From NCBI GenBank assembly GCA_904063045.1, contig CAJFCJ010000006.1:3116408-3180407 (forward strand): 64,000 bases of DNA, given 5' to 3'. Below the pieces are notes generated by a model. It was not told the DNA's origin, made no database searches, and saw nothing but the letters and a program-made list of their open reading frames with translations. This DNA comes from Dimorphilus gyrociliatus. Taxonomy: Eukaryota > Animalia > Annelida. A program made the translations under genes and the position numbers. Shown in pieces: positions 38,653-45,004 of the stretch (the first letter of the stretch is position 1; every line of letters starts with the position of its first letter).

Positions 38653-41092
38653 TTAAGCTTTATAAGGATATTTTAAAGTCATATTCTCAAAAATAACATT
38701 TTCAGAGTAATATTGAACAAGTTCGACAATCGACGGAAACATAAAGTCTTTATATACATAAACACAATTAGCCCTTTTTTCAATTCTAACATGCTTCGGA
38801 TTATGTTTCACTCTTACAGTTATAGTGAAAAAACTTTGATTATTCAACCTCGTCTCTCTAACAAGGAATTTCCCTTGTACAGAGGCAGTTAAAATATTTT
38901 TTGCTTCCTCCTTAGTCATAAATCCTGCATACCTATATTTGAATAATACAAATTATTATTACAAACAATACAATTAATAATATAAATGTATATCTAACCA
39001 AGGCATATTTGTTAAATCTTCAGTATGGCCCAGTTTAGTTTCGTTAAAAATACAATCGTATTTATCACCTTGATTTAGACATTCGAAATGAGACTTGATA
39101 AAGCAATTGGAGCATTGATATCCTTGACGAATAATACCTTTTAATGTATAAGTACAAAAATTACAGAAAACAGGAGTTTTCGTTTGAAATGTTTTTAGAG
39201 AAAAGTTATGATTTTTAACAAAATAATGATCAAACTTTTCGAATAATGTTTTAACACTACTCTCTAAACTTTCAAAAGCTGTATTATCTCTTGCGTTTAT
39301 AATCAATTTTTCTGTAGGATTATCCACGGAAGATAACTTTATTCCATATTGCCATTTTTTAGATTTGGAATTATCTAGTAGTGAATATTTATAATCGCGT
39401 AGATAATATTGCCTTTTAACTTTATATTGATTACCATTATTCTGTAGGAAAGGAATAAAAATAGGAATTTATAATGATGAAGACTATAGAAACAATAAAC
39501 AGTTTAAGGATATCTTATCAATAAAATATTTCATTTTAAATGGTAATAAAAGATAGAGTATATCGTAAACTTACCTGCTTCTTTTTTAAAACGAATAGAA
39601 CATCGTCAAATAACAGAATATATCTGCGTTTATCGTCAATCTATTAAGGGAATAATAAAATAGTCGTTTATTTCTTAGTTATGCGTAAGAAAAATAAGCA
39701 TGTTATCATTAGTTGAAAAAAAAATTGGTATCTTATCTGTTTCCTTCCAGTAAAAAAAGTGTCAAGTTGTTTTTTATTGTATTTTGCAAAGTTGTTCTTT
39801 GTACTTACCATAAATTCACCATCCAATAAGAAATGTCCAAAATCTGTTAAATTCTGACTTGAAGGTAAAAGTCCTTCGACTTCTTTTTGTATTTGGGAGG
39901 TGTTTATCAGCATCTCAGTGTCTCTTAGCATTTCATTCGTGTATTTTAATATATCTTCTATTGCGTATTGCGCCTTTTTAATGGTACCCTTCTCCTTAGG
40001 AGAATAGTTGTCGGATAGGTATAAATTTGAAAGGATTAACGGATATTTTGTTAATCTCATCATTGGAACTTTCAATAGTTCCATTGTGGAGAAACAATAG
40101 TCAATTGAGTCACTCATATTCTTTTCGCAATCAAAGAAAAGCTGCAAATTTGCTTTCGAAAATTTCATCAAAGTATCCTCAATAACAGGAATATTTGCAC
40201 AATAATCGCCGTACATGGAAAAATTTACTCTATTATTCAAAAATATTTGTCCTATATTGTTTTTGGAGTTGATCACTTCTTGGAGTTGTTGTAAAAATAC
40301 TTTGTGAAAGGATATTAGCCGATCAATACCATTAAAAATGATCTTGTGATCACTTTCACAAATTTTACCTTTCAGCGGAATCATAAAAAACGTTTTTATC
40401 GGAAGTAAACTCTTATTCAAATATATTTCTTCCGTTTCGAGAAGTTCATTGAGGGCATAGTTTATTCCATCTGTAGAATCTGTCGAATTTAGGTTGGTTT
40501 TACCGAGTAATTTCTGATAGATGCTATCCTCTTCCTCCTCCCTATTTGAGTTACTAACTGAAAGATTTATATAAATTGCTCCTGGTCGGGATGGAGAAGA
40601 ACCGTTTTCGTCTTCTGGTAGACTGTAGCCATATGGATCCCAATCTTTAGAAAATTTACTTTCTGAAAGTTTGTATAAAGTTCGAAGAATAGGAAAGCCG
40701 TTAACTTTAAAAAAATCGGTTATTTCAAATATATCCTTTGATTCTAATCCAAAATATGAGCATGTTTCTCTAAATGCGTTAATATTTCTGGTGCTAAGAA
40801 ACTGGAAATAAAAGTAAGCATTGTTCAGCCTTCCAGATAGTGTATAAAATGAACAAAAAAACAAACAATAAAGTTTTATTACCTTTGAATTATTCGGTCT
40901 GTAAGAGAAATGTGTTAATGGTAGAATATCGGGCTTTAAAACATTGCATAGATTACATAGAATGACACCATCCTTAAGTAAATTGATAAATTCTTCCAAT
41001 GTACTATTCGGTAAGTTAATCGGATGATCTTTGCTAATTAATTTACAAACAGTAAACCATCGAACGTATTTCTTCCAATCATTGGCAGCCAT
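38653..41092 (-). CDS. Divergent Vav paralogue (CH-acidic-DH-PH-C1-SH2) lacking both SH3 domains
   Basis: CH start homologous to neighbouring Vav (LLKDGVILCNLCNVL), EEEEDSIYQKL, DH (ELLETEEIY...PMMRLTKYPLIL), PH (RRYILLFDDVLFVLKK), C1, then W|YAG SH2 ending YPYKA*. Four intron positions are shared with Vav. Confidence 0.9.
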
Positions 41093-41570: not shown

Positions 41571-43466
41571 CTAACTCCTATTTCGTAGTTTGTTTTTGTT
41601 TTGTTTTTTACTAACATTTGGTAAGAAATTCAATTGTGGAAACATTCTATAAAATTTTTGAACGTTATATCCATCAGTTGAAATTGATTTTTCATTTCCT
41701 TTAACAAACAATTTTATATTCTTAGAATTTTTTATTACTCTGCCTTCTTCCGCTTTGAAATGGTTGTTGAAGACTAAATTTCTAAGAAACTGAATACGGT
41801 CTTTTCTAGTATTCTTTTGGGAATATTCCCTCTGGAGGGAGTGTAACCTTAATGTATAAATAACAGAAAAAATTTCATTAGGAGAGAAGTCTTTTCATCT
41901 CATTTTTCATGATTAAATATAAATGATAATAGAGGGGAAAATAATGATATATCTTTGTATATATATATATATATATCTATATATGATGTAAAAGTATACC
42001 TTGTTTTTATTTGTGATATTACTAAAACAGGTTCTTTAAATGTTGAATCATCTAAAATATCCTCATTATTTTCGCTAATTCTTTTAGAACCGATAAATTT
42101 GACTTTTCTAGTAAAATTAATGAAAGGTGGATGCCCTATGTTAATCGGCTTAAGAACTCCTGAGAATCTATATATAGAACGATTGGTTTATCTCTTAAAT
42201 GTGAATATGTTATATATATATATATATATAATGTATATATTAATTAATTTTTATACTGTCTTCCAGAATCTAATCTTTTACTTATTACTTCGGGTCTGAA
42301 GAACAGGCAATGGGATAGAATATCTTTGAAGGGCTTATTTAAACAGCTTAGCGCAAACTATTATAACGTAAGATAAATATTTATGAATAATATTGATATA
42401 TACATATATATGCGAACTATAGTAGAGTAACCATAACCAAATATTCCATATGAGAAACAGTATTCCAATTCAACTGATGCAGTTACAGCATCGTGTTCTT
42501 TTAGTTCCAAAATATCAATGCGATAAGGATTCTAGGAAATTATAAATTATGTGGTGGTTTCTCATATGCTATTTTACATAAAAAAAGAGGCGTATGTTGT
42601 GTATTTAATAATTACTTGGATAATTTCAAACATGTCAAGGTCTCGGGAGGCAAATACGAAATGATCTTTATCAATATTGTCAGGTTCAGGGATAATAATA
42701 AACTCTATTCTAACATTATTAGGCGATGATATATTCTTTGAAATAATCTAAAATTATTAATTTTGTTTAATTAATAAGGAAGAAATAAAATCAATTGTTT
42801 GATATACAAACTCTTGGTAAGCTAAAATGAAACACCTCATCAATAGTAAAGGAATGAGGTAAATTTTCGCAGTCTATAGCTTGAGAAGCTTTTATATAAT
42901 CCTGAATACATATCCGCAAATACACTTTTAATGGATATTTAATGGAGTCTAGGTATTAAACAATAATACTATCAAATAAAATTCATTTTTTTATTATATT
43001 TTCTGTCCTACAAATATCTTGAAGCATGTAGCTTAAAATATGAGCCTTCTTTATGTGTATTGCCAACACTCCAGACTTGTCAGGAAGAGGAGAATTATTA
43101 ATGGTGCTATAGAATTACGATGTTTTATGTCTATACTAAACTGGGTAAGTTTGTAATGAAGGGGATAAAATACTATGAGCATTGACACTTTGACCATACG
43201 TAAGGCTACTGCTAATAAAATAGTGCAATTATTCTTTGCTACTTTAGTAGTTTCTCTTCTCACTGTTTACTTACACTCGAGAACTTTCCACCGATTCTGA
43301 GAAATACCGTTTAATGCATATAAAACAGATAAAATATCAACAACTTTTAATATAAATGTTTTATATTAATTTTAGGGAACTGACCAGAAGGTAATAATTT
43401 TGTTTTACTCATTGTTAGTATTAGATTGTTGATGGAGAATTTGAACTTAGAAATCATTGATGACAT
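41571..43466 (-). CDS. C2CD6: C2CD6 / ALS2CR11 (CatSper tau)-like C2-domain protein; not in ORF track; 5' end uncertain
   Basis: Phase-consistent exons 43106-43012, 42948-42812, 42747-42616, 42531-42418, 42357-42257, 42167-42000 and 41847-41571 encode SGVLAIHIKK...VYLRICI...IDEVFHFSLPR...DMFEIIQ...ELEYCFSYGIFGYGYS...RLHSLQREY...DRIQFLRNL. This is collinear with recalled C2CD6 motifs (GCLGIHIKN, FDEVKYFSVQVPR, LYEIIQ, EFMFSYGNFGYGFS, RLEKMKKEY). Confidence 0.75.
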
Positions 43467-43717: not shown

Positions 43718-45004
43718 TCAGATCCTGTTGTAACGGCCTAACATTTGATGACAATTAGGACAAGTATGTACGACATCCTTTGTTGAATCCAAACAAAATG
43801 GTATCAAACAACACAGCAGCCACCAAAAAAAGAAACATAATACTGCAGCCAAAACCCAAGTCAGAGCTCCTACTTCGTAGTCGGTGGCAGTGAGTATTTG
43901 AGCATTGCAACGAGTACAATTCATTTGAACTGGAAATTCACGAAATTGATGAACTAATACTGCAGTGGGTTGAGTTGTTACAACAGTAACGTTCGAGTGC
44001 ATGGTACCTGAATGGGATATAATATTTTAGTTTAATTTTTTTCAATAGATATTTAAAAATTGAGGCACAACAAATATCTAGATTAAAATATGATACAATT
44101 TGTTGATTTGTGATCGATAAGTCTAATTGCTTTAATACTTCACTTAATCCCATACTATAAAGTATAATTTAACTGACAACTTTGTTAACAACATAGTCAG
44201 CTAGACAAGATTCACTGAAAAGATATCGTGCATGGAAACTTTATAAGGCTACAAGACATTGTATAATTGACAATATAAAAGAAAAAAATGAGTTAGCATC
44301 CATTGCAAACATGCAACCAGCGAACTACTGCAATCTCTTCGTACAACATATTTGATTTGCTAATTGTATACATTTTTTACCCTGTGTGTAGATTGGATAT
44401 CCTGATGTACAAATTATAGAGAGTTATATTGATAGCTTTGTTAAGATTCTTGTTAAATAATACAAATATAAGACTCAATATAGTTGTAAAATTTACCAGT
44501 TTGTCCGGGAATCTGTCCATAAGCTGGCGGAGCTGGAGTTAAAGACGAATAACCTGCTGGAAATGTATAAATGTCATAATCTTTAAACAAGATAAAGTTA
44601 AAATGAAAAAATATCAGGGAAAATTATGCAATATTACTTAGCATTACAGTTATTCTATTATTAACTTAAACTAGTTTTAATCTCAACCTTTAGTTAAAAG
44701 TGATAATCTTTGTGTGATGTGTCTAGAATAATGAAAATGGAATTAATTAGATAAACTCTCCCTACTTCTAGTCTTATTCTCAGGAAGCAAGTCTCAAAGC
44801 CGATTTTGTACAGCTCGTTTGCACATCAAAAAGAATAGAATGTGGTATGAGGACGAGTGTGATGATAGCAGTATCACATTCCGGAAACCAATTCCGTATA
44901 CAAGTAATTTGACATAGAGATAAATATTCATTCATACCTTGATTCACGAGAGGTGGTGGAGGAAACTGCTCCTTTGTCTCAGAATAAGGCGGAGGTGCGG
45001 ACAT
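43718..45004 (-). CDS. LITAF/CDIP1-family zinc-binding monotopic membrane protein
   Basis: PPxY motifs (PPPY, PPAY) then a LITAF domain (CTRC...hydrophobic...CLIPFC...KDVVHTCPNC). Exons 45004-~44938, ~44553-44497, 44401-44381 and ~44008-43718. Confidence 0.93.

Follow-up and report, generated by a model that had tools for sequence, protein, structure and literature searches.

The window analysed here, a 64,000-nucleotide, AT-rich stretch (~30% GC) of the 77.9 Mb genome of the annelid Dimorphilus gyrociliatus, carries on its minus strand a nine-exon gene. We consider it likely that this gene is a single-copy, short member of the CTSRT family (CatSper-tau, C2CD6, PF15729), with a putative role in targeting to the sperm flagellum. 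The predicted protein would begin with a short N-terminal lead (exons 1-2), followed by a tau-type C2 domain (exons 3-6) that closes with the motif F-S-Y-G-x-F-G-Y-G-Y-S. Exons 7-8 would supply a linker with prolines, and exon 9 a conserved helix at its start and then a basic tail.

Structure and conservation of the nine-exon gene

Judged from its sequence, the nine-exon gene is real. Its reading frame opens with an ATG at 43466 and closes with a stop codon at 41571-41573, and the exons in between (Table 1) were joined by tracing acceptors, donors and phases across the three minus-strand frames. All eight introns have GT..AG borders, none of the nine exons contains an in-frame stop, and the phase chain (0>1>2>1>0>0>0>1>2>0) is unbroken. 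Together the exons sum to 1095 nt, equal to 364 codons plus the stop. Microexon 2 was included because the frame of exon 1 otherwise fails to link with exon 3; both exons are tentative, since they were placed by frame logic alone and lack comparative support. The exons are missing from the ORF track because none of them forms a long ATG-initiated ORF. The first-pass annotation had drawn a gene over exactly the span 41571-43466, with consistent splice phases and with its exons outside the ORF track, and all of this holds in the model presented here. Its seven exons and ~340 aa give way to nine exons and 364 aa. It had also described the long acidic tail of the mammalian protein as absent, in agreement with the basic, Lys/Asn-rich C-terminus in which the open frame ends. 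Short (TA)n microsatellites lie within introns 7 and 8 (window 42215-42245 and 41960-41990).

Table 1. Exons of the CTSRT-family candidate gene in window coordinates, with amino-acid identity to the orthologous exon of a related species (contig L001) and hhalign matches to the family alignment A2. A slash marks the splice point.
Feature	Position	Strand	Content	Identity to L001	Family match
Exon 1	43385..43466	-	start codon 43466; open frame; donor G/GTCAGT; phase 1 at end; tentative		
Exon 2	43275..43296	-	22-nt microexon; acceptor ttctcag/, donor /GTAAGT; phase 1 in, 2 out; tentative		
Exon 3	43012..43106	-	C2 strand 1 (G-V-L-A-I-H-I-K-K)		P 0.042, positions 27-41
Exon 4	42812..42948	-	C2 strands 2-4 (Y-L-R-I-C-I-Q-D ... 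D-E-V-F-H-F-S)		P 0.001, positions 53-87
Exon 5	42616..42747	-	mid-C2	65%	not significant individually; family likeness by eye only
Exon 6	42418..42531	-	last C2 strands, F-S-Y-G-x-F-G-Y-G-Y-S motif at end	92%	P 1.2e-8, positions 140-167
Exon 7	42282..42357	-	linker with L-F-F-R-P-E	58%	not significant individually
Exon 8	42000..42159	-	P-P-F-I-N-F region, lead-in to conserved helix	64%	P 0.51, positions 209-238
Exon 9	41571..41847	-	conserved helix (R-E-Y-S-Q-x-x-T-R-x-D-R-I-Q-F-L), Lys/Asn-rich tail, stop	56%	P 2.2e-5, positions 251-277

The same-strand neighbors of the gene, each confirmed by Pfam, are a LITAF-type gene on one side and a Vav-type gene on the other. Directly upstream, a LITAF-like zinc-ribbon gene occupies window 43718-44002 (-) and scores 91 bits; an ORF with a P-P-A-Y motif at 44453-44590 (-) looks like a possible N-terminal exon of this LITAF-like gene. 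The Vav-type gene directly downstream is represented by a large exon (window 39668-41092, -) with CH and RhoGEF domains. We considered a fusion with the upstream LITAF gene and rejected it: the LITAF ORF terminates by itself, at a stop codon 250 bp upstream, which makes the nine-exon gene a separate one.

Evidence that the exons are coding and maintained comes from a related species. When exon 6 was used as a phmmer query against 1.84 billion representative proteins, it returned two short ORF fragments (P0001 and P0002) at 92% identity. The contigs behind these fragments, L001 and L002, are genomic DNA of a related species with ~68% nucleotide identity to the window. A third match, the bacterial repeat protein P0003, was dismissed as spurious, and no named C2CD6 was among the matches. 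In tblastn searches with the separate exons, exons 5, 6, 7, 8 and 9 were found in this order on L001, with AG acceptors and GT donors at the matching exon borders. Summed over these five exons, pN is 0.21 and pS 0.73, the latter saturated, giving a pN/pS of 0.29. The conserved order, the conserved splice positions and this ratio indicate that purifying selection acts on exons 5-9 as coding sequence. The L001 contig ends short of exons 3 and 4, which are instead backed by the family-profile matches described below.

Exon 6 occurs as a single copy in the genome. A word search of protein collections with a stretch of exon 9 had one match, the related species' fragment P0004. No transcript-derived protein spanning a junction was found by this search or by the exon 6 phmmer search of 1.84 billion representatives, and the protein collections searched yielded no annotated protein that holds these exons.

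These observations bear on the least favorable view of the locus, namely that it is a decaying or never-expressed relic, or simply a chance chain of open exons. The missing transcript-derived or annotated protein would fit such a view, as would the two 5' exons that comparison does not back. Against it stand the canonical splice sites of nine open exons whose summed length is divisible by three, the conservation of coding sequence and splice positions in the face of saturated synonymous sites (pN/pS 0.29), and a homology to a known family that runs along the gene. We therefore judge a relic or chance chain to be very improbable, and we take the gene to be intact. The practical upshot is a re-annotation: a true gene was overlooked by ORF tracks and unseen by exon-level Pfam scans.

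Relationship to the CTSRT family

Direct tests of family membership were negative at the level of single exons. As a check of its C2CD6 reading, the first-pass annotation had named a search with the ALS2CR11 family profile; run exon by exon, an insensitive test, this gave no match to CTSRT (PF15729) or to any C2 family at E up to 10. Pfam scans of the L001 orthologs, carried to the same E value, likewise had neither CTSRT nor C2. PF15729 found nothing when the whole genome was scanned in six frames, no exon matched the classical C2 domain (PF00168, cut-off 22 bits), and an Atlas search with exon 6 produced no usable match. How little these exon-level negatives weigh can be seen from a 69-aa, motif-bearing exon of a clear family member (L010:2273-2479:-), which is also missed by the Pfam CTSRT model, yet scores 46.6 bits on the family HMM described below. 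Exon-level Pfam scans are blind to the CTSRT family in intron-rich genomes.

Intron-poor relatives provided a bridge to PF15729. We scanned metagenome contigs with a degenerate DNA pattern for F-S-Y-G-x-F-G-Y-G-Y and obtained 22 loci, six of which (L007, L008, L010, L011, L019 and L024) are similar to the annelid gene outside the motif or at other exons. The remaining 16 are chance matches, including two loci from human-gut metagenomes that had no match in the bulk comparison and were used no further. Two of the six, L024 (1214-2428:+) and L011 (450-1382:-), each hold one long uninterrupted frame, of 405 and 311 aa respectively; both exceed the curated PF15729 cut-off of 24.4 bits, with 33.5 and 28.3. 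When L024 alone served as the query of a word search, it retrieved nothing but itself. A profile search started from the two frames led to three proteins, all tagged PF15729: P0005 (the L024 gene), P0006 (373 aa) and P0007, a 484-aa product listed as 'C2 domain-containing protein' (J8273_6642) in the metamonad flagellate Carpediemonas membranifera. P0005, P0006 and P0007 score 33.2, 27.1 and 32.8 bits over PF15729 profile positions 7-143. Short, intron-poor PF15729 genes thus occur in a metamonad and in two environmental eukaryotes.

The aromatic/glycine motif ties these proteins to exon 6. In the relatives, the last position of the Pfam CTSRT model falls within a few residues of this motif, and its residues F, Y, G, F, G, Y, G and Y are invariant in the alignment of PF15729-positive proteins (A2). 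The C2 domain of the family ends in F-S/T-Y-G-x-F-G-Y-G-Y, and exon 6 carries the corresponding sequence, E-Y-C-F-S-Y-G-I-F-G-Y-G-Y-S. In human C2CD6, a very similar stretch, F-S-Y-G-x-F-G-Y-G-F-S, presumably closes the C2 domain.

The other four loci, L007, L008, L010 and L019 (ERZ17400xx assemblies), contain the same intron-containing homologue, with exon 3-, exon 6/7- and exon 8-like pieces in order and weaker exon 4- and exon 9-like pieces; the equivalents of exons 6 and 7 are fused in it. Examples are L010:2273-2479:-, L010:1690-1983:- and L008:2484-2672:-. An exon 3-like exon is present in the animal-like contig L008, and the four contigs probably stem from the DNA of an animal host within a host-associated metagenome. 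For P0007, an AlphaFold model built from four sequences has low confidence (pLDDT 42; 65-75 over the helix); in it, residues 59-192 form eight strands and the conserved block after them is helical.

We then compared the window with a family HMM built from P0005, P0006, P0007 and the L011 frame, with the window sequence excluded. Among 2688 stop-free window segments in six frames, the best match was exon 6, at profile positions 140-167 with E 1.3e-5, followed by exon 9 at positions 248-284 with E 7.5e-4; no other segment fell below E 2. The L001 ortholog of exon 9 matches the same family positions. A search of the whole genome (78 Mb) with the family profile gave one match, exon 6. Alignment to A2 with hhalign (Table 1) ranked exons 6, 9 and 4 as the best three window segments, against a background in which 0 of 380 window segments reached P 0.01 or below. 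All aligned exons (3, 4, 6, 8 and 9) are collinear with the family, including exon 8, whose match lies at the collinear place. In the linker, the L-F-F-R-P-E of exon 7 resembles the family's L-F-P/Y-R and the P-P-F-I of exon 8 resembles P-x-F, at similar spacing when compared by eye; the exon 7 stretch begins 19 residues after the motif, the corresponding distance being 17 in P0006 and L010.

For exon 6 the match is biased, since the relatives were discovered with its motif as bait. Exons 4 and 9 are independent of this bait, and exon 9 was not used in the motif scan. The gene thus shows significant collinear homology to proteins that pass the PF15729 cut-off. Its tie to vertebrate tau is transitive, since it is routed through protist and environmental proteins. 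With this qualification, the earlier claim of a C2CD6-type C2 gene gains support from the PF15729-passing relatives, to which exons 3, 4, 6 and 9 match collinearly.

The same matches could be read differently. The gene might encode a ciliary or flagellar C2-like protein of a wider superfamily that includes CTSRT, MAP10_N and similar domains, acting independently of CatSper and not orthologous to vertebrate tau. The sole Pfam signal on any exon points in this direction, a weak MAP10_N (PF14924) match on exon 4 with 13.1-13.7 bits (cut-off 21.5) and E 0.06-0.09. The protist relatives clear the PF15729 cut-off narrowly, by 3-9 bits, and a MAP10_N cluster is the second-nearest Atlas neighbor of P0006, the nearest being a mostly chordate cluster that is 100% PF15729. 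However, the exon 4 match falls on MAP10_N profile positions 90-123, which is out of exon order. In P0005-P0007, PF15729 leads every other family by four to five orders of magnitude; the next matches, to classical C2 and NT-C2, are weak (PF00168 at 18-20 bits, cut-off 22), and MAP10_N has no match at E 0.1. It is with the PF15729-positive set specifically that the gene shares the motif and the downstream helix, and the genome also contains CATSPERB, a CatSper helper gene. Taken together, we regard a CatSper-independent protein of a wider superfamily as unlikely, and membership in the CTSRT family as the better reading of this gene.

CatSper, proposed function and age of the family

The genome of this annelid very probably keeps CatSper, as far as its sequence can tell. 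Three collinear exons matching CATSPERB_C (PF15149; loci L003-L005) lie at G000:C14:946777-947617 (+); the cut-off is 27 bits, and two of the exons reach 54.2 and 45.2 bits. Genome scans for the CATSPERD and CATSPERG beta-propellers (PF15020 and PF15064) were blank; given the insensitivity of searches at the exon level, this leaves their absence unproven. The first-pass annotation had offered two branches, that this animal retains CatSper or that tau has an older, CatSper-independent ciliary or flagellar role. Because the CATSPERB exons score far above the cut-off, the retained-CatSper branch is the better one. In another annelid, Platynereis, 'CatSper complex' genes are male-biased (PMC11195272), and some molluscs and arthropods retain sNHE and sAC without CatSper, as reported by Romero and Nishigaki (PMC6660944).

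A function in the worm can be proposed by homology to mouse CatSper-tau. In the mouse, the C2 domain is required to bring pre-assembled channel complexes into flagellar nanodomains, and loss of CatSper-tau results in male infertility (PMC8857959). C2CD6 is absent from the solved CatSper structures as described in the literature. By analogy, the C2 domain of the annelid protein may bind membrane or vesicles bearing pre-assembled CatSper channels, and the remainder of the protein may couple this channel cargo to the flagellar transport machinery, which would deliver it to the sperm flagellum. Male germ-cell expression, membrane binding and a link to the channel are all inferred from the mouse protein.

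Databases already tag the Carpediemonas protein with PF15729, and its occurrence in this metamonad flagellate makes the PF15729 family older than animals. The founding C2CD6 papers, one of which (bioRxiv 10.1101/2021.07.06.451342) describes the gene as conserved among vertebrates, cover mouse and human alone; our literature searches found no paper on C2CD6 outside vertebrates. What is new here is a compact, probable protostome member of the tau family in a genome that very probably keeps CatSper. We propose tentatively, and with slightly less than even confidence, that tau is an ancient eukaryotic flagellar C2 protein, ancestrally short (about 360-480 aa, consisting of the C2 domain and one conserved helix), and present from metamonads to annelids. 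The long mammalian tail would be a later addition, and the annelid gene would be expressed mainly in dwarf males. Such male-biased expression would account for the failure to find an annotated or transcript-derived protein. Should the family occur in lineages that lack CatSper as well, a CatSper-independent membrane-targeting role of tau in cilia would have come first.

The core that the annelid gene conserves with Carpediemonas and the environmental relatives comprises the tau-type C2 module with the motif at its end and the helix downstream. It could serve as a small, tractable version of tau for studying the delivery of CatSper to flagella. It also offers a handle on a question for phylogenetic profiling, whether tau always accompanies CatSper.

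Comparison with known proteins

MAP10_N (PF14924) and the classical C2 domain (PF00168) would share with the annelid protein a beta-sandwich, C2-like fold, and show weak, sub-threshold similarity. All of their scores remain below the respective cut-offs, the position of the MAP10_N match breaks the exon order, and the family motif and downstream helix were matched only to the PF15729-positive set.

P0007 of Carpediemonas and the environmental proteins P0005 and P0006 share the overall layout of the annelid protein. A lead is followed by a C2 domain that closes with F-S/T-Y-G-x-F-G-Y-G-Y, by L-F-P-R and P-x-F, and by a helix with R-E-x-S-Q..R-x-D-R-L-x-Y-L; at 373-484 aa they are near the 364 aa of the annelid protein in size. 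Outside the motifs, pairwise identity is low. Their genes are single-exon or intron-poor, whereas the annelid gene has eight introns. The tails of P0005 and P0007 are acidic, in contrast to the basic or neutral tails of the annelid protein and P0006.

Mammalian CatSper-tau (C2CD6, formerly ALS2CR11) differs from the annelid protein in size. Mouse isoforms of about 70 kDa and over 200 kDa have been described (PMC8857959), compared to 364 aa in the annelid, and the mammalian long isoform has a long acidic tail that the annelid protein is without. Moreover, no annelid exon alone reaches the Pfam model. What the two proteins would have in common is an N-terminally placed tau-type C2 domain, matched in the annelid via the PF15729-passing proteins, and both are encoded in genomes that keep, in the annelid very probably, CatSper subunits.
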